A program made the position numbers and the translations under genes. Below, piece by piece: positions 51,677 to 64,000 of a stretch of 64,000 nt of DNA; the first letter of the stretch is position 1, and every line of letters starts with the position of its first letter. This stretch comes from Salpingoeca rosetta (lineage: Eukaryota > Protista > Choanoflagellata). Below the pieces are notes generated by a model, which saw only the letters and a list, made by a program, of their open reading frames with translations, was not told where the DNA came from and did not search any database. Location: positions 74,432-138,431 of the forward strand of contig JAWQFM010000017.1 of the NCBI GenBank assembly GCA_033442325.1, written 5' to 3'.

Positions 51677-52473
51677 ATGGAGGCGAAGAGAAAGACAGCA
51701 GCCACAGCAACTGCTGGTGGTGGTGGTGGTGGTGCGCGCACACCGCGCACGCCCCAACAGCAGCAGCAGCAGCAAGCGCAGGGACGACCGGCGTCTTCAA
51801 GCAGCAGTGGCAGCTCCACAACAGGGTCTGCTCGCTCTTCTCGTCGTCGCACAGGTGGGGTGTTTTGGGAGAAGCAGAGTACGAGAGCACGTTGATCGCG
51901 TTGACCGTGTGATAGTGTGGTTGCAGTTGTTCTGCTGTATCGCATGCAGCATCTTGCCAGCATCCACAATGATGCATGCACACACACACACACACGCACA
52001 TACACTCATCCACACACGCACATGCACTCACACTCGCTCACACACATGCACTCACACACACACACACACACACTCTCTCTCTCTCTCTCTCTCTCCTCTC
52101 TCACCGAACCACACATATCGCACTGCCTCCAACAGGCCGCCGTTTACCAACACCAGGTCAGTAGTGCAGTGCAATGTGACGATCCGATCGCTGTTGTAGT
52201 GTCACCCCCCCCCACCTTCTCATCATAGACACAAAGACGCCGACTCTCATCCTTTGTTGCACGCATGCATGCACCTGTTGGTGGAACCAAAGGGGCGAAA
52301 GCGCCAGCGACAGCACGGACGCCATCCAGCAAAGCTCGGCCTGGCAGCGGCTCATCTGCGGCCGATGCAGAAGCACGGCGCAAACGCATGGAGGAAGCGC
52401 GTGCGCGCAAGAAGGCAGAGGACAAGGCTCGCCACGAACACATGGTCGCTCTCGCACAACAGTCCGAGGTGTG

Positions 52474-52521
<48 letters not shown>

Positions 52522-53109
52522 TCACTCCGGCTTCAGTTGTCTTGTCCACGACGTCTTTGCTATCCCTTTCCATTCTCGCCCCCCCCCCTCACCACCGCCA
52601 CCATCATGTGATTACAAAGGCTCGAGCGGCCAAGGCAGCACAACGGCGTGCAAAGCAGCCGTCCCCGAAACAACAGCAGAAGCAGACACACGCACCTACA
52701 TCCCCGACTCCCTCGCCAGCAGCGAAACACCCAAAGACTGCCAAGACCACACGTTCCCCAGCCAGCAGCACTTCCGCAACCACAGCGATCGCTGCTGCAG
52801 CCACCAAGAAGGACAATGCCAAAGCAGATAAGGGGAAGGAGAAGGGGAAAGAGAAAGGAACGGGGAGAACAGGCCTGTTCCGCGCAGCCCGCATGTCAAA
52901 GGGGAAGGAGGATAAGAACGGCAAGCAAGACAGCAACAAGAAGAAGGCCGATGTGCAGGTGTCACTCATGGAAGCGACAACGGCTGGTGCAGCAGCATCC
53001 CAAACGGCGAGCACCAAATCGCATGCAGCGCCGCCATCGCCGACGCGGCCCACGTTTTCTCGCTTCTCTCAACTCGACCCAGCGCCATCCACGGTACGCT
53101 GTATGGATG

Positions 53110-53185
<76 letters not shown>

Positions 53186-53241
53186 CGCGCATGTGTGTGT
53201 ATGTGTGTATGTGTGTGTGTGTGTGTATGTGTGCATGTGTG

Positions 53242-53279
<38 letters not shown>

Positions 53280-54599
53280 TGTGCCGTTTGTGGGCGCATT
53301 TTTTCCTTCCTCACGTTGCGCGCAAGCAACCCTCCCTTCTTACCCACTTTGCACACTCACGCACACTCACAACACACCCCGTGCACGCTGCCAGCCCACC
53401 ACGAGTGCGTCATCATCGCGTCGCAGCAGCAAGAGAGATACGCGCGCCTCCAAGGACGTCGGCAGGGCACAACCTGCCAACGGCGAAGCAGCCGATGAGG
53501 ACGTCGGCGGCACACGCGACCGTGATCGTTCCAACACTGGTGCCGACAGCGACAGCGGTGAGGGCGAGGATGACGAAGTGACGAGTGCACGCGGGTCTGG
53601 CGGCGGCGGTGAGCACACCTTCTCCCGGAGCGCGAGCGTCCGCAAGCAGATACAGTACACGCTGCGCCGGCAGGAGTCTGAGGCGCTGATACAGGAGCTG
53701 TTGGACGGTGATGTGGCGTCGGCATCGTCATCCACATCATCTCCATCGCTCTCACGCACGCAGCACGCCCGCCACAGTCAGCAGCAGAAGCTGAACGAAC
53801 TCGGCGAAGAGGAACAGCAGCAGCAGCAGCAGCAGCATCATCAGCAGCGGAGGGAGGTGGATTTGCGGCTTGGCGGGAGTGTTGGTGATGATGCCGGTGC
53901 TCGCGATGGCAGCGGCAGTGATGAGGACGAGGAGGAAGGCCCGCCACCGCCACTTCCAACATCATCGCCACCGCCACTCGATGTGCACGAGGAAGCGGAT
54001 GAGGAGGAAGCACGTTTGGACGATGCAGATGCAGGCGCGAAAAGGGATGATGCGGAGAAGAACGAAGAACGGGCCGCGACGACAATGGGTGGTGATCACG
54101 GCGCCACTTATGGTGGCGAACGTGACGCAAAGGCGACGCACACGGCCGCACACGCTGCCGACACAGGAACGTCAGCAGAGAGCGAGGCCGCTGCGTCACT
54201 GCCAGCAGAATCCCGCGTACACACGCGCGATGAACGACCACTTGTCCTGGCGGAACGCAAAGCTTCACTGCGATCGGCACTGGCCGACCACCTAGGCGGT
54301 GGCGGTGGCAGTGGCGATGATAACCAAAAACAGCAACAACAACTGCTGCAGCCTGGTGAGCAGGAGCCAAAGCTGGTGTGGAAGAAGCATCAGCTGCACA
54401 TCAACAAAGGCCACGGTCCCCTCGGTTTTGCCATCAAGAAGAAACGCAGCACAGATCTCCCGTACCACCTCTGCACAGGTAACACTTTTAATTGTGTGTG
54501 TGCGTGTGTGCGTGACTGTGGGTGTATGCACATGTGTGTGTGTGTGTTCGTGTGCGTGACTGTGGGTGTATGCACATGTGTGTGTGTGTGTCTGTGTGG

Positions 54600-54658
<59 letters not shown>

Positions 54659-56284
54659 TCGGTGCACCTTCGTGTGCAAGCACCTTGCTTTTGTTTCCGC
54701 TTCCAAGATTGCGTTTTGCGTTATTGGGGCCGGCTGCCTTGCTCATATCCACCGCCATCACCACAACCATCACCTGCCGCCGTGTCAGGCACGGTGAAGG
54801 AGGGTGGGGCTGCGCGCCACGCTGGACTGCGCACAGGGGATGTGCTGTGCCGCATCAACGGCCGTGATCTGAGGTCAACCAGCAAGGAGCAGGCCACGTC
54901 GCTGCTGCGGCACGCATCCGGCACCGTCGCCATCACCGTGTACAGGCGGCAGCTGGCGAGCGAGACAAGCGGGCCGACAACACCGCAGATGGTGCGGCGA
55001 CAGCGATTCATGGCAGCCCAGCAGCAGCAGCAGCACCAACACGATGCCGACCAGCATCGGCAGGAGCGTGACCAGCACCAACAGTACGGGGAAGTGCCAC
55101 CGTCGCCGGCGTCTGTGGTGACGGCCACATCACCGCTCACGCCATCGGGCGACGCGACGGGCGCAGAGGAGAAGGAGGATAGCAGTGATGCAAAGGGCGC
55201 TGGCGCAGTGGTGGTTGACTTCACGACGCCCAAGGAGCAAGAAGAGACGATTGCAGAGATGCGTGATACAGAGCAGCGGGAGACGAAAGAGGCAGGAACA
55301 GCACAAGAGCAAGAAGCAGAAGAAGGGAAAACAACAGAGTCAACAGCGACGACGGATCGCGTGCAGACCGAAGCAGAACAGCGGCAACAGCTGCGGACAG
55401 AAGAGGCAGAAGAGAGGGCGGAAGCAAAGGCCGCCGCCTCCGACACGGCCGCCGCTGCTGCTGCTGCTGATGGCACCACCGACCAAGTCATTGACGAAGA
55501 CGATGATGATGATGATGACAATGAAGATGATGACGAGTTCCATGATGCTCGAACAGGTGAAGAGGAGGATGAGGACGACGACGACGACGATGAGAAGTAC
55601 TGCGGTTTCCCATCGTCGCCCGACCAGCGGGAAGCGCACGCAACTACCGTCACAAGAGCCGGTGCTGGTGACCATGATGATGTTGGTCGTGGCAGCGGGC
55701 GTGGTGGCATGGCGATGTCTGGCCCTCCGTCGCGTTTCTCCGGTCCGCGAACGGAATATCTCCAGCGGCAGGTGAGATAACATGGAAGCAGTGCTGACGT
55801 GATGGCAACACGCTGGGTCTTTGCCTTACTTAACTGTGACATGCTGTTGTGTTCTTCGTGTGCATAGTGTTCTTCGTGTATATGCCCACGTCCACGCTCA
55901 CATGTGCGTGTGTGTATTTGTGCGTGAACAGGTGTCGGCCATGCGTAGTGTTGACGAGGAAGAGATGCAGCAGCAGTTTGAAGAGGCGCTTGCATCCACC
56001 GCTCGTCCGCAGGTGCGAACACACCACGCGTACTGCAGTTGATGTGTTCGCTCGTGCAAGCCGTCCAGTCACAACCACACTGCGATGGTCACTCAAGCAC
56101 AACTTGGCGCGTGCTTGCTTGCATGCATGTATTCATGTTTGTATGGGTAGGAGACGCGTGTACATGTGACAACTGAGGGCGGGGAACCAATGCCCATCGA
56201 CGCTGCGTTTGTTTCTGGCGCCGTGGACAACAACAGGCGTTACATCATGTCCCAGGTTGGCGCTCGCGTCCGTGTTTTGTGGTG

Positions 56285-56367
<83 letters not shown>

Positions 56368-56920
56368 ATCACCTTGTAATTTGTTGTGTTGTGTTACAGG
56401 TTCGTGCTTGTGGTGTCGTTTCATGGACACTTCCGTTCCTTCACCGCGGCGCACAAGCAATCGCTCACTCGTTTGCACGCGTCACTCACACCACCACCAC
56501 CGCAGCCACCGACCGAGGACACGGCAGCCGCCTTCTGGCAGATGGTCTGGGATCAGGATGTCAGAGCCATCATCGCTGTCTCGGACAGCAACAGCGGCGA
56601 CGACAGCACCGGCGTATCGTGTGTGCCCAACACACTAGCAAGCGAAACGTACGGACGCGTTGTGGCGGGTCTTGTATCCAAAGGAGAAGAGGAGTGGTGG
56701 GTACAGCGACAACTGCTGATTGAGTGCGATGGCCGCCGCCGCCCAGTCCTGCACATGACCGTGCACATACCGACACCGGTGTCAACACATCGCCAACACC
56801 TTCAATCCCTGACAGCCCTCGTTCGCCACCTCCGCACCCTCGCCGCAGCCGCCGAAGGTGTGAAGCAACCGTACACGTGCGTGGGTGTGCTGTGTGTGCG
56901 TGCGTGTGTGTGTGTGCGTG

Positions 56921-56966
<46 letters not shown>

Positions 56967-59152
56967 TGAATTTCGTGCCCACATCTGTGTCTGTGTCCGC
57001 ATGTGTCCGATTCTGCCCACCTGCGTAACAACCGGCTTTGGTCTCGCAGCATTCACGCACACTCATTCACTCGCTCGCCCTTTGCAAACTCAACACACCT
57101 TCGCACACACCTGCACACGCGCCAACAGGTCCGCTGCTGGTGTATGAGACGAGCGAAGCCGAGCAAGAACAAGATGGTGACAATGACGAGGAGAGCCGTG
57201 GTGCCTCGGGCCTTGCTGGTGTTCTTGTCGCTGTTCACCGCATGTACGACGCGATTGCGGCGCAGCTGGAGCCCATCAACACCGCCGCCACCATCGCCGA
57301 CATGTGTGCACAGCGGGAGGGCGCCGTGCGGACGCGTGAGCAGTGCGCAACCGTGCACGCAGCGGTGCTGCTGCTGTTGGAGATGGAACAGAGCGAACTG
57401 CAAACGCAGCTGGAAGCAACAGAGGAGCGTGCCCACTCACGACAACAGGCGTGGTCAGATGCCAGCAGCAGCACGGCCACAAAGGACCAACAGCAGCACG
57501 AACAACAGCCGCCATCCAAGTCGTCGCCTTCTGCAGTCCATCCTGCACCACCCAAATCCTCCACCGCAACACCGTCATCAACAACAGCAGCAGCTGCTGC
57601 GTCAACAGCAACATCAACAGCAGTGCGTGCACTGGAGACGGGCACGGCGTATGGGCCAACGCGTCCCATGAACGTGACGCAGGAGCAGCTGCAACACTTG
57701 CGGCAGACCCCTGTACAGCGCTGGCGGCACAACGACGTGCTGCTGTTCCTGGCGTACCTGGACCTGTCGTGCCTGCAGGCACACCTCTCGTCCAAGAAGG
57801 GGCGCAAGGGGCGCAAGGTGAACGGGCGCGTGCTGGCCTCTCGACCGCACCAGCTGCTGGCGTGTCTCGGCACCAGCGTCGCCAGCCACCACCGTGAGCG
57901 GCTGCTCGCCGGCGTCTCCGCCCTCTGTGCGCGCGATTCCCGCCTCCTCTTCACGGCCGACCGCGATGCAGAGCTGATCAAGCACACGGGGGCGCACCAG
58001 CTCTCGTGCGGGGCCACGGCACTGCCTGCATTTGTCAAGCGGGGTGGCGCCGTCGCCGTGCGCATCGACTGCTCAGACGTGTGTGCAGGCATGGGCCGCG
58101 TCATGTATGTCATGCAGCCAAAGGCAGAGGCAACGACGGAGGATGTGCTGGCGTTTGCGGTTGGCAAGTGCAACCTCGGCACCATCCCACTCACGGCGCT
58201 GTCGTGTGTGCTTTACTCGCATACCCACGACACGGCACGTGAGATTGGGCCGTCACCGCGTGATCTCCGCGACGCCGCCCTCCGCATCGTGCACTCGTGC
58301 GGGGAGGAGGACATGTGCATCCGCTGGCGACACACGTGCGCAACCGGCATGAAACGCGTCCACGTCGACATTTCCACCCTCACTGGCGCAGCTGCCACCG
58401 CCGCTGACACAGCAGACCGCACAGGCAACAGTACTCGTGTGTCTGTGATGGCGGGGCCAAGGACACCGGTGTCGACGGTGATTGCATCCGTGCTCGCCGC
58501 TGCTGCTGCTCCTGAATCTGTGGAGTCGTTTGCTATCGAGTTCTTTGACACGCGGCTCATGCCAACAGATGCCCTCGCACCGGCCTTTGCCAATGGTGTG
58601 TGTATGTGTGTGTGTGTGTGTTGAGGGGGGGGGGGGGTTGTGTTTTTTCGGGCCTGTGTGTGCCTGTGTGCCTGTGTGTTCCTGTGTGCCTGTGTGTGCC
58701 TGTGTGCCTGTGTGTCTCGTGTGTGTGTGTGTGTGTGTGTGGTGTGTGTGAATGTGCCTGGACCTGGAATTTCACCGAAATATTTAAAAAACCCAGCCAA
58801 TTGTTTCTGACACTGGTTGTTCCGCATTTGAATTCCTTTTAAAGTTTAAAAGGGAGGGGCGGGGGATCCTAAAAATAAGACCGGGCCGAAATTTNNNNNN
58901 NNNNNNNNNNNNNNNNNNNNNNNNNNNNNNNNNNNNNNNNNNNNNNNNNNNNNNNNNNNNNNNNNNNNNNNNNNNNNNNNNNNNNNNNNNNNNNACACAC
59001 ACACACACATATGCAAACACATACACGCGTGTTGGCTGCGTTCGCCATTTCAGGCGGAGAATGCGCAGTTGCGCCAACAGCTTCAACAGCAGGCTGATGT
59101 TGATGACCTCAGACACCAGGTGTGCGAAGGGCGTACTTTCAACGCTTGTGGA

Positions 59153-59233
<81 letters not shown>

Positions 59234-62200
59234 TGCAAGCAGGCATATTTGAAAGCTTCCAGCCCCTCATGCCATGTCATGCCACCGCCTTGTGCAACGT
59301 ATGGTCGTAGGTCGCTGCATATGAACAAGAGATTGCACAGCTGCGGCAGGAGTTGCAGTCAAGCAACAACGAACGAGCCCAAGCAGAGGCAAAGGCAGCA
59401 GAGAAGACGGATGACGACTCAACGCTGCAGGCGAAACTCAAGTACAGATATTGAAGTGCTGTCATCACACTCACTCACTCACTCACTCACTCACTCACTC
59501 ATTTGAGTTAACCTAATTCATGCACTCGCTTACATACACACCACACTCACCATGACAGCGCGGAGGTGGCTGCCCTTGAGGCGCAGGTGGCGGCGGCGCA
59601 GGAAGAAGCGACGAAGCAGCTAGCAGCAGAACGAGCAATGCGTGAGGAGATGGAGCAAGCGCTCACATCTGCAGTGCACAGCGGCAATGATGAAGCACTG
59701 CCCGCTGCCGCTGCCCTTGAGGTACAAATCCCTGTCATTCTGACCCTGGCAAGGGCGGTAGTGGTCACTGTTGTGTGCAGTGAAGGCACGCGGGCGTACG
59801 TTCTTTTGAGCACATACATACGCTTACAATCACACACACGCACACACATTTACACACCCATATTCACACACACACATATTCACACGCACACCAACGACCC
59901 ACCACCACCGTCAACCAGCGTGCTGCGTCCGCCCGTGACGCGATGGTGCGTGACTTGTCTGCGCAGGTGTTTGCGCTGCGCCGCGCGTGTGTCGAGAAGG
60001 AGCGGCTGCGGTTTTCAGAGCAGAGCAGCGACTCGCCCGAGGCGAAGGAAATCCAGGCCATGCTCGACGAGAAGCTGAAGCTGGCGGTATGTGGTATTGG
60101 TGGCGGTGGTGGCGGTGATGGTGGCCGAGTCATGTGATCGATTGTTCGTGTTGTTTGATTGTTGATGTTGTTTGCCATGTTGTTGTTTTGTTCAGTGTTT
60201 TCCACGAGATGGTGGCATCCGATATGGCAGCTGTGATGTGGGACAGATGAGTGCTGTTTGTTGTGCTTGTTTGGACGCGCACACCACACTTGTCTCACAT
60301 TCAACATTTACATACGCACATACAATGCACGCGCAAACACACACACACACATGCAACACACATGCATTCATGCGCACAACCCGTTCCCCTGCATTCGACA
60401 TTGCAGGGCGAGGTGCAGACGTTGACTGCGCGCGTGTACGAGCTGGAGACGGAGCAGGAGGCGACAACACGATCACGCATGGCCATGAGCCCGGCGTCCC
60501 ACGTCGCATCGGTGTTTGGGGACGCGTCAGCGCGCAACTCACCCGCACTCTTCCGCCGCGCGAACAACGACCGTGAAGGCGACAGCGACACGGGCGCCAG
60601 CAGCGACGTGGTTGGGCCAACGGCGGCTGTGCCTGCAGGCACAAATGGTGATGGCGGTGGCACCTTGACGCAGCTCTTCAGCATCATCCAGTGCAGTCTT
60701 GTTCTTGCTGTGGAAGTGGAGAAGGCGGATGAACCGCTGGGCATGGCCCTTCGGTCGTCACGGTTCGGGTCAGACTCCAACGCCCTGTCGGTGATTGCTG
60801 TTCGCGGCGTCACGCCAAACGCGGCCGCACACCGGGCCGGCATTGAGAGCGGCGACCTGGTGGGTGGCGTTGTTTGTTTGTTTGTTTGTTTGTTTGTTTG
60901 TTTGTTTGTGTGTGTTTGTTTGTTGTGTGTGTTTGTGTTTGTTTGTTTGTTTGTTTGTGTTTGTGTGTGTTTGTTGTGTTTGTTTGTTTGTTTGTGCGTG
61001 TGTGTACATTAGTGTGTGTGTGTGTGTGTACGTTAGTGTGTGTGTGTATGTTTGTCTGTCCGTCTTGTGTGTGTGTGTGTTACTGTGTGCGTATGTCCAT
61101 ATGTCCGTGTCTGTATCTGTGTATTCATCCATCAGGTACACTGCCGCGCACACGGCGTACAAATTGCAAACACCTTTCCCCTTTCCCTCGCCCCCCCCCC
61201 CCCTCACCACAACCCAACCTGCACACCCCACAGCTGTTGCAGATTGACGACGTGTATCTGGTCGACGCCACGAAGCGACAGGCCGTGGCCGCGGTGCAGG
61301 CAGCCGGCGACCGCGTGCGTATTGTGCTCGCCCGTCCCGGTGGGCTTGACGTCGCATCCAGGAAGGCAAGTGCACCGCCGACCGCAACCGCAACGACCAC
61401 GACCACAACAGCCGATGTTACGATGGGTGCCGCTGGTGGCACCAGCGATGGTGATGGCGATGGTGCTGTTCCCTCGGCGGGCAGTGGCAGTGCGCTGAAC
61501 GACGACGCGGAACAGCTGTTGCAGCGGCTGCGGGAGAAGGAACGGGAGACAGAGAGCCTTCGTGCGCGCCAGAAGTCGCTGTTGAAGCAGCACGACGAGC
61601 ACGTGGCCGCACTGCAGCGGTACGAGAGAGAGCGCGATGCTGTGCTGAGAAAGGCAGCCAGCACCCGTGCCCGCCTCAGCCGCAGCAGTGGCAGCGACAG
61701 CACGTCGCACATCACGACCGCCACGAGTGCTGTGAACACACCGTCACCGCCGCCCAACAAGGGCGATGAGGGAGAGGCAGGAGAAGAGCACGAAGAAGAA
61801 GAAGAGGATTTCCAGTCCCGGGTGTTTGGCGTGCTGGAGACATCGCAGCAGAATGCAGTGGAGGTTGAGCGACTGCGCGGTGAGGTGGAGCGGCTCAAGG
61901 CGAGTGTGCAGGAGTACAGCGACGCGCTGGCGAGTGCACAGGCGACGCTGGCAAAGGAGAAGGAACTACACACGTCCGCATCCGACACGCGCGCGCGGGA
62001 AGAGCAGCTGCGACGTGACCTCGCTGCAAAGACGATGGAGTTGGATGTGCTCAAGGGGACAGCGGCCGCGATTGAGGAGTCGCTGCAGGAGGCGCACAGC
62101 ACCATCAGCGGTCTGCGCACAGAGAACTTGCAGCTGCACGAAAAGCTCAACAGCGAGGGCGGCTCCCCGAAACAGGTGTGTGTTTTTGTGTGTGTGTCGT

Positions 62201-62307
62201 TGTGTGTGTCGTTGTGTGTCTGTGTGTCTGTGTGTCTGTGCGTGTGTCTGTGTGTCTGTGCGTCCGTGTGTGCGTGTTTTTGTGTGTGTGTGTCGTTGTG
62301 TGTGTCG

Positions 62308-62350
<43 letters not shown>

Positions 62351-64000
62351 AGTGTGTGTTTTTGTGTCGGTGTGTCGGTGTATCTGTGTGTGTCTGTGTG
62401 TCTATCTGTGTGTCTGTGTCTGTGCGTCTGTGCGTCTGTGTGTGTGTGTGTGTGTGTGTGTGCGTCTGTGTGTCTGTGTCTGTGTGTACCTGTGTCTGTG
62501 TGTCTGTGTGTGCGAAACCACATTTCGCTCCCCGTTCGCCCATGCTTGGGATTCATTGGCCACACGCTTTCCTCCCCCCCCCCCTTTTTTTTCTTATCAA
62601 TCCCACGCTTCCCCCCCCCCCCTTCCACCCAACACGCACGCACGAATTGCAGACGGCCAAGCTGAAGGAGGTGATGGCGAAACACAACCAGGAGAAGGCC
62701 AAGTACCGGTCCCAGCTCGATGCCATGAAGAAGAAGGTGAAGGAGGCAGAGGCACGCCAACGCGGCGACACCAAGCGGCTGCAAGGCGAACTGACACGCC
62801 TGCAGAAGGCGCTGGCTGATGAGGAGGGGCGGGCGGCGCAGTTGGAGGAGAAGGCACGCGAGTTGCAGCAAGAGCGCGACGAGCTGCAGTCACGCGTGCA
62901 CAAGCTGGAGACAGACGCATCGACGCTCACGGCGCAAGCTAAGGAGGCGGCAGATGTGCAGCAGCGCACAGAGGCCGCGATGAACACGTCCATTGGTAGT
63001 CTGGACCGCGACCTGCAGGCAAAGACGGCAGAGGCGGAGCGGCTGCGAGCGCGTGTGCAGGAGCTGGAGAAGCAGGTGGGGCAGCAGCGCAGCAAGCTCG
63101 ACGGGCGTGCAGCCGACTTTGAGACGGGGAAGAAGGAGTACAGGGAGGAGATGAACGCGCGTGTTGCGGGTGCGGAGGCGGCGGCGACAGAGGCACGGCG
63201 GGAACGCGACAAGTCTCTACAGGAGCTGGCGCAGCTGCGAGCTGAACTGCAGGCGAAGGACTCACTGGTGTCATCACTACAAGAGGAGCGCCATCAGTTG
63301 CTGCAGCAGGTGCAGCCCGGTGCAACAGCACGCCGTGGTGATGGTGGTGATGATGGTGGCCACAGCGGCCAGGCGAAGAACGGCAACGGGAAGCCAGCGT
63401 CATCAGAGGTGAGCGTTTGTACGTGTGTGTGTATCTGTTGTATGTGTGTTGTGTGTGCGAGTGTGTGTGTGTATGTGGTGTGTGTGTGTGTATGTGTGTG
63501 TGCGTGTGTGTGTGTGTGTAGGAAAGAGTTGTGACTTGAGACTTCATCGTGTATTCATGCACCTGTCTCACACTCGCGTTCTCACAATGCACTCGCTCCC
63601 TCTGCCACCTCTCTGTCCATTTTGTTTCTTGCTTGTGCAGCTGTGGGACATTGTGTGCAGCAAGAGCAAAGAGGAGGTGCTGAAGATGCTTGAGGACCGC
63701 GACGAGGAAGCGGAGCGGCTGCGCACGTACATCGAAGGCCTTATGGAGGTCATCATCGACAAGTCGCCAGACATCCTGGAGCACGTCAACAAGCTCAACG
63801 TCTCGGTACGCGTGCGTGGCAGGGTGTTGTCGAATCCACCATGCTGTGTGCATTGTGCTGCGTGGCTTGCTGTCTCGCTACACTGTCGGTGTGCTCACTC
63901 ACTCATGAATAGTACTCACACGTGTTTGACGACTTTGCACGACCTTGTACGTGACAGCAACACGGCTTTGTTGGGTCGCTGCGTCGCTCACACCGCCGAT
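51677..64000 (+). CDS. Multi-exon scaffold: low-complexity N-term - PDZ - acidic linker - pseudo-PTP - SAM - RA/Ubl-like x2 - coiled coil - PDZ - coiled coil - FIP-RBD-like; 3' end probably just outside window; could be two genes
   Basis: Same-strand exons separated by GT-AG microsatellite introns (e.g. donors 52469, 53093, 54479, 55772, 56255, 62176, 63409). PDZ: [10 protein letters not shown]|[28 protein letters not shown]-like: IDAAFV..YIMSQ|[32 protein letters not shown]: [28 protein letters not shown]2: [25 protein letters not shown]|LLQID. RBD: [39 protein letters not shown]. Confidence 0.75.
54388..54950 (+). other. PDZ domain 1 (two exons)
   Basis: [18 protein letters not shown]... 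| [53 protein letters not shown]. Confidence 0.9.
55933..57385 (+). other. Protein-tyrosine-phosphatase-like domain lacking catalytic motif
   Basis: Degenerate equivalents of YINA, YIATQGP, TxxDFWxMVW, PILVH and QRxxxVQTxEQY motifs in the right order; no HCxAGxGR and no WPD. Confidence 0.82.
58895..58994. other. Assembly gap (100 N)
   Basis: Run of N. Confidence 1.
60700..61338 (+). other. PDZ domain 2 (two exons)
   Basis: [14 protein letters not shown]...[20 protein letters not shown] | [34 protein letters not shown]. Confidence 0.88.
63641..63805 (+). other. Rab11-FIP-type Rab-binding domain (FIP-RBD)-like exon
   Basis: [22 protein letters not shown] matches the FIP pattern LxxYIDxLLxxIMExxPxILE, at the end of a long coiled coil. 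Confidence 0.8.

Follow-up and report, generated by a model that had tools for sequence, protein, structure and literature searches.

A long coiled coil ending in a near-C-terminal Rab-binding domain of the Rab11-FIP type (RBD-FIP) is the layout of the class II Rab11-FIPs (FIP3/FIP4 and Drosophila Nuf), and ELKS/ERC likewise has a FIP-RBD at the C-terminal end of a long coiled coil. HD-PTP/PTPN23, a large endosomal sorting scaffold, contains a domain of the protein tyrosine phosphatase (PTP) fold that is inactive or impaired. We know of no animal FIP with PDZ, PTP, SAM or RA modules. No group is more closely related to animals than the choanoflagellates, which possess very large phosphotyrosine toolkits of largely uncharted cell biology. 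Here we analyze a 64,000-nucleotide stretch of the choanoflagellate Salpingoeca rosetta (assembly GCA_033442325.1, contig JAWQFM010000017.1, forward-strand positions 74,432 to 138,431), hereafter the window, in whose coordinates all positions are given unless another contig is named. We find strong support for one protein-coding gene at 52265-64053 on the + strand with 18 visible exons. The reading that we favor, with a probability of roughly 0.72, is that this is a single choanoflagellate scaffold gene that has a dead PTP domain and whose product would act as a Rab11 effector.

Gene structure and boundaries

The exon model was assembled from open frames, GT-AG sites and intron phases. It comprises ~2,559 codons over the 18 exons (~7.7 kb of coding sequence), and every junction is GT-AG and in-frame. 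The G+C content of the gene region is 55-65%. All exons lie on the + strand and encode, in order, a first PDZ domain (PDZ1), a dead PTP, SAM, RA (RA1), a second RA-like beta-grasp (RA2), a coiled coil, a second PDZ domain (PDZ2), a FIP3-like coiled coil, RBD-FIP and a basic tail. Every motif that a first reading of the sequence (the original prediction) had listed is present in the order given there and on one strand, as judged by Pfam, predicted structure and orthology.

The boundaries, originally drawn at 51677 and 63805, both had to be moved. Exon 1 (52265-52468) opens with the first ATG following an in-frame stop and encodes a basic motif homologous to the Barroeca monosierra N-terminus, which places the start at 52265. 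Position 51677 was rejected as the start; it begins a separate 72-codon open reading frame (ORF) on the same strand, which stops at 51895 and is without counterpart in the orthologues. That upstream ATG ORF is rich in Gly, Gln and Ser, and may be 5′ untranslated region, an upstream ORF (uORF) or a chance occurrence. At the other end, a further exon with the stop codon (exon M, 63958-64053) lies downstream of 63805; the window ends at 64000, the gene's stop ends 53 bases beyond it, and the remainder of exon M was read from the genome. Exon 2 (52620-53093) is a low-complexity basic and Ser/Thr-rich segment, placed by its open frame, AG/GT borders and phase 0. The least certain splice sites of the model are the donor between exons D and E and the acceptor of exon A. 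Most introns carry or open with long (GT)n or (CA)n microsatellites, which translate as Cys-Val repeats; examples lie at 54490-54660, 56270-56370, 56890-56960 and 62180-62500.

Orthologues in other choanoflagellates

The layout recurs in four other choanoflagellate species. In three of them it is found on single transcriptome ORFs: S. infusionum (2,349 and 2,387 amino acids, in which Pfam calls PDZ, PTP, PDZ, coiled coil and RBD-FIP), Choanoeca flexa (1,766 amino acids; PTP, RA, PDZ, coiled coil and RBD-FIP) and Hartaetosiga gracilis (1,421 amino acids; RA, PDZ and RBD-FIP). The fourth, B. monosierra, is represented by a public model of 1,818 amino acids and by a genomic contig. In tblastn searches the orthologue proteins are collinear with the window along 53.5-63.8 kb, on both sides of an assembly gap that interrupts the gene. 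The H. gracilis ORF is marked as complete and begins just before RA, which may reflect a shorter isoform, an internal promoter or incomplete assembly.

An exhaustive search of 1.84 billion proteins with exon E, which encodes SAM and RA, returned six proteins. All four named sources among these matches are choanoflagellates, and the two others are fragments from metagenome or sequencing-run assemblies. Word-index protein searches with exon E and with Barroeca residues 1230-1700 gave no match, from which we conclude no absence, as we suspect that low-complexity words and low identity may account for it. The family has so far been found only in choanoflagellates, and the proposal of a lineage-specific architecture is borne out as far as searched. 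Searches of the available literature library found no description of a PDZ-PTP-SAM-RA-PDZ-RBD-FIP architecture. The orthologue proteins are already in public sets, uncommented.

PDZ, SAM and RA domains

All searches were run exon by exon, and the Pfam scans covered open frames and then single exons. The domains of the original prediction fared unevenly in these hidden Markov model scans: PDZ1, Y_phosphatase and RBD-FIP score above cut-off, SAM and RA of S. rosetta are without a match, and PDZ2, scored on its first half, falls below its cut-off. An intron divides PDZ1 into two parts (54370-54478 and 54789-54950), and the domain reaches 34-36 bits against the Pfam PDZ cut-off of 23.2. Its first half closes exon A (53434, or alternatively 53455, to 54478), which otherwise encodes a disordered acidic region and is supported by phase and by tblastn to Barroeca and S. 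infusionum. The second half opens exon B (54789-55771), where Pfam finds PDZ at 34.4 bits and PDZ_6 at 34.7 bits, and is followed from ~54950 by an acidic linker. The junction between exons A and B is borne out by the uninterrupted Barroeca protein sequence.

PDZ2 is also intron-split (60713-60859 and 61234-61344), and its first half, the part that was scored, reaches 14.3 bits, below cut-off. The orthologues have clear PDZ domains at the collinear place, with scores of 28-66 bits, and the S. rosetta assignment is made by orthology. Both PDZ1 and PDZ2 keep an intact GLGF-type loop. PDZ2 lies between two stretches of coiled coil, at 59054-60500 and 61500-63300. The first is encoded by exons F (59054-59119), F2 (59311-59441), G (59559-59721) and H (59919-60086), each placed by frame, phase and homology to Barroeca, and ends in exon I (60407-60859), where a linker separates it from the opening half of PDZ2. 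Exon J (61234-62175) holds the second half, to ~61344, and then the start of the second coiled coil, which runs on through exon K (62653-63408).

Exon E (57129-58597) contains, in order, the dead PTP P-loop with an acidic insert, the Q-loop, a Ser/Thr/Ala linker, SAM, RA1 and a truncated RA2. In S. rosetta, the exon scan gave no Pfam match to SAM even at an E-value of 10, and neither the open-frame nor the exon scan matched RA. Because Pfam called neither domain, residues 171-489 of exon E were folded with AlphaFold from an alignment of eight relatives (mean predicted local distance difference test (pLDDT) 78, predicted template-modelling score 0.69), and the model was run with VIA-align against 48,161 PDB representatives. 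The region 57689-57937 (model residues 17-99) matches the SAM domains of DGK-delta and Shank3 (Z 7.5), CNK (7.4) and liprin (7.1), with root-mean-square deviations of 1.9-2.1 Å and 21-25% identity. With Z-scores in this middling range, the model supports the presence of a SAM fold with moderate confidence. RA1 (58043-58339, model residues 135-233) matches Rasip1 (Z 10.2), PLC-epsilon (10.0), AF-6 (9.8) and NORE1A (9.3), and Foldseek aligns it to RA domains of the RalGDS family (Rgl2 and RalGDS) with template-modelling scores of 0.65-0.77, the best being 0.77 to the Rgl2 Ras-binding domain. The RA identity, a weak call in the original prediction, is upheld by the predicted fold, with Z up to 10.2. 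RA2 (58352-58597) is cut short where exon E ends; Foldseek also returned tandem-ubiquitin matches, which fit a second beta-grasp. Among the orthologues, Pfam RA rises above cut-off in one place, the second RA domain of H. gracilis (27.6 against 21 bits).

The Rab-binding tail

The predicted agreement of the C-terminus with RBD-FIP was found. At 63665-63784, in exon L (63641-63805), PF09457 reaches 31.4 bits (cut-off 23.3, E 1.7e-7), and 30.7 bits in a scan of the S. rosetta genome (55 Mb). The domain is positioned near the extreme C-terminus, with ~650 residues of coiled coil before it and ~38 residues after it, and exon L is 73% identical to its Barroeca counterpart. The tail that follows in exon M is basic and conserved, with matching ends in the H. 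gracilis and C. flexa proteins. It has a motif common to orthologue C-termini, Val-Gly-Ser/Thr-Leu followed by an Arg-rich run with Arg-Arg-Ser, reminiscent of a site for basophilic kinases or of a patch that binds membranes. S. infusionum instead has a hydrophobic, tail-anchor-like stretch after the RBD in its last ~40 residues, where the other species have the basic Arg/Ser-rich tail.

The strongest rival to our reading accepts the gene as one unit and supposes that its FIP-type helix merely dimerizes or binds another GTPase. Such a role has been discussed for the FIP-RBD of ELKS/ERC. Several features lend themselves to it: by sequence, exon L matches PDB chains with E-values of just 0.02-0.08, the Asp of the Tyr-Ile-Asp contact motif of FIP3 is replaced by Glu, and the genome scan found two further PF09457 loci, on contig C16 (1326773-1326892, - strand, 25.9 bits) and, split by an intron, on contig C20 (1099080-1099157 and 1098627-1098671, - strand, 19.9 and 18 bits). 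Long frames beside these two loci contained no Pfam match to C2 or EF-hand, and the same holds for every exon and long frame of the gene itself. On the other side, the Pfam score exceeds its cut-off, and the PDB chains matched by exon L are exclusively Rab11-FIP3 RBD chains. The alignment to human FIP3 is gapless, with the hydrophobic face preserved and with the Tyr-Ile and Pro-x-Ile-Leu contacts kept. Upstream, exon J has a weak match to the Rab11-FIP3-like coiled coil PF25450 (18.9 bits, below the cut-off of 31.9, and alongside many other weakly matching coiled-coil families). Additionally, RBD-FIP is kept at the C-terminus in all five species. We therefore consider a role unrelated to Rab11 unlikely.

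Continuity across the assembly gap

The intron between exons E and F (58598-59053) contains a run of 100 N at 58895-58994, a nominal length, and the original prediction had called continuity across it unproven. GT/CA repeats follow the exon E donor (58598-58640) and come directly after the gap (58995-59010), and these flanking repeats probably explain why the assembly broke there; 58650-58717 is a further repeat-rich intronic stretch. Comparison with relatives gives the best evidence for one gene, and the strongest single item comes from an N-free Barroeca genomic contig of 8,522 nt (L008). The contig has an uninterrupted 679-codon ORF (1296-3335) that leads from the C-terminal end of the PTP across SAM, RA and a second RA into the first coiled coil. 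By tblastn this ORF contains counterparts of S. rosetta exons E and G, and that of exon F is visible in the protein alignment. Counterparts of exons H-M, including PDZ2, coiled coil, the 73% identical RBD-FIP and the basic tail, lie downstream on the same strand. The public Barroeca model (1,818 amino acids) is truncated; it stops where the 679-codon ORF enters an intron.

These comparisons bear on a second rival, in which the gene has undergone fission at the gap into a PDZ-pseudoPTP-SAM-RA gene and a coiled coil-PDZ-RBD-FIP gene. The gap would conceal the junction between the two, and the H. gracilis ORF provides an example of an N-terminally shorter product. However, exons F and F2, directly after the gap, lack any Met, and their homologous segments in the orthologues are internal; exon E has no terminal stop and ends within a beta-grasp domain; and the sister species Barroeca reads through in a single ORF. 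We regard fission as improbable, and judge it highly likely from these comparisons that one gene crosses the gap. The original doubt is thus partly answered, with orthology supporting continuity and ~55-60 codons probably missing from the assembled sequence, as described below.

Word content of sequencing runs speaks to expression of the region after the gap. Of the 31-letter words sampled across 59000-63900, a share of 0.54-0.57 is present in each of eight runs, which come from two studies, as against 0.83-0.87 in three other runs. In our model, the share of wholly exonic 31-mers over the same interval is 0.535, so the lower group looks like spliced RNA with every post-gap exon. This is indirect evidence, and it informs the post-gap exons and not their linkage across the gap.

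A degenerate phosphatase and a missing block

The PTP domain is spread over four exons. Exon B2 (55932-56012) would supply its N-terminal helix and is placed by its open frame, AG/GT borders and phase 0, its likeness to orthologues being judged by eye only. Exon C (56151-56255) scores 12.4 bits alone and is collinear in the alignment, exon D (56506-56884) carries the PTP core with a degenerate WPD region, and the beginning of exon E (57129 to ~57400) contains the P-loop and Q-loop segments. The best piece for PF00102 Y_phosphatase is exon D, with 29.7 bits against a cut-off of 20.9 (E 6.4e-7), which the alignment also supports. The matches are collinear with the profile, exon C covering positions 16-48, exon D 50-139 and exon E 181-233.

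The original call of a dead PTP is borne out. The P-loop segment of S. rosetta has no Cys and is interrupted by an acidic insert of ~12-20 residues (the length depends on the alignment), neither Trp nor Asp stands at the WPD position, and the KNRY segment is absent between exons B2 and C; a recognizable Q-loop segment is kept. The PTP of C. flexa is canonical, with WPD, HCSSGVGRTG and Q-loop, and matches LAR and PTP-sigma at E-values of 1e-94 to 1e-98. S. infusionum keeps HCX5R, and Barroeca keeps the P-loop Cys with Trp in place of Arg. Judged by its sequence, the S. rosetta domain is catalytically dead. Because C. flexa is canonical, Barroeca has lost the Arg and S. rosetta has lost Cys, WPD and KNRY, the loss is derived and stepwise: the family started from an active PTP, and the activity disappeared along the branch of S. 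rosetta and Barroeca. The family thus displays a graded conversion from enzyme to pseudoenzyme.

S. rosetta also lacks a block of ~55-60 residues that lies between the counterparts of the end of exon E and the start of exon F in 4/4 relatives. This was seen in region-wise alignments, which were used since a full-length alignment with the exon peptides as fragments scattered the coiled-coil exons. In a model of the Barroeca protein, the block completes the second beta-grasp with its final strand and continues through a linker into the opening turns of a long helix with an invariant Arg-Asn (pLDDT only 41-71), and the S. rosetta model of exon E correspondingly ends mid-fold. No frame in 58598-58649, 58718-58894 or 58995-59053 encodes the block. 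It was not found elsewhere in the assembly, whether the query was the Barroeca segment or a profile built from four species, at low sensitivity, as the Barroeca-segment query also failed on regions known to be homologous. Since the block is present in all four relatives exactly at the position of the gap, the S. rosetta exon is probably unsequenced, and we predict one small exon of ~170 nt (~55-60 codons) hidden in the gap.

A dead PTP and a missing block could also be read as decay, making the locus an S. rosetta pseudogene. The PTP Pfam score has indeed fallen to ~30 bits from the 162-239 bits of the orthologues, and the ~55-60 residues are missing. Against this, all 18 exons are open (~7.7 kb coding in total), every junction is GT-AG and the phases agree, PDZ1, SAM, RA and RBD are still well formed, and the word share in the eight runs fits spliced RNA with every post-gap exon, so that we hold a pseudogene to be very improbable. 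Least credible of all is that the gap joins unrelated contigs and the fusion is an assembly error: the 100-N nominal gap and the adjoining GT/CA repeats would suit such an artefact, but single transcripts of three species and the ungapped Barroeca genomic contig all show the same domain order, with strand and order collinear.

Some observations count against the favored reading of a single scaffold gene with a Rab11-effector role. Pfam calls neither SAM nor RA in S. rosetta, and PDZ2, searched one exon at a time, stays below cut-off. The protein searches made did not recover the annotated protein of S. rosetta itself. The splice junctions, including that between exons E and F across the gap, are drawn from the sequence model and orthology, and the in-frame join of E and F is uninformative because the GT repeat after exon E gives a donor in every phase. 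Finally, shorter forms of the gene may exist, because the H. gracilis ORF is without PDZ1 and PTP.

Proposed function

The most likely function that we infer for the protein is to serve recycling endosomes as a dimeric scaffold and Rab11 effector. Its coiled coil and RBD-FIP would form a parallel dimer that binds Rab11-GTP and places the protein on recycling endosomes. There, the two PDZ domains could hold C-terminal motifs of membrane cargo, the RA domain or domains could take input from Ras/Rap-type GTPases, and SAM may contribute self-association or oligomerization. In S. rosetta the PTP fold would serve as a docking module only, and in relatives with an intact PTP site cargo might be dephosphorylated on the recycling route. 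The links of the scaffold to recycling endosomes, phosphotyrosine and small GTPases are all conditional in this sense.

The conserved placement of PTP, PDZ and RA on a Rab11-FIP tail hints that phosphotyrosine signaling is coupled directly to endosomal recycling, a coupling of which we know no animal counterpart. A tentative extension, possible though not probable, is that ancestral choanoflagellates used a FIP-type Rab-binding helix to tether an active classical PTP directly to Rab11 recycling endosomes, where PDZ and RA supplied inputs, and that S. rosetta and Barroeca converted it to a pseudophosphatase scaffold. If true, this would constitute a dedicated dephosphorylation station on the recycling route, one that animals do not have. 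In practical terms, the S. rosetta reference probably misses a coding exon in the gap, in addition to the truncation of the public Barroeca model.

Comparison with known systems

Among the nearest known systems are the class II Rab11-FIPs, with which the S. rosetta protein shares its long coiled coil and near-C-terminal RBD-FIP; its RBD matches FIP3 alone in the PDB, and the weak PF25450 match points the same way. It differs from them in having no detected EF-hands and in adding PDZ, PTP, SAM and RA. The original prediction described animal Rab11-FIPs as pairing the C-terminal RBD with C2 or EF-hand domains; in animals RBD-FIP extends beyond such FIPs, as ELKS/ERC also carries it. ELKS/ERC in turn differs from the S. 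rosetta protein in being without PDZ, PTP, SAM and RA.

Other proteins share parts of the remaining architecture. PTPN13/PTP-BAS and PTPN3/PTPN4 also combine a classical PTP with PDZ in a cytoplasmic scaffold; however, the S. rosetta protein has no detected FERM or KIND domain, a different domain order, a dead site and a Rab-binding tail. Orthology with PTPN13 is not supported, since the C. flexa PTP is closest by sequence to LAR/PTP-sigma. In Afadin/Radil/Rasip1, the RA fold, which gave the top structural match, is likewise accompanied by tandem beta-grasps and a later PDZ, whereas the S. rosetta protein has no detected FHA or DIL domain and identity is just 11-14%. GOPC/PIST resembles it as a PDZ and coiled-coil trafficking adaptor and is its nearest named ESM-Atlas cluster (0.88), a lead only, and differs in being without RBD-FIP. 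HD-PTP/PTPN23, with its Bro1/V domains and ESCRT binding, is of unrelated architecture, and the likeness is drawn at the PTP fold only: like it, the S. rosetta scaffold carries an inactive PTP fold.

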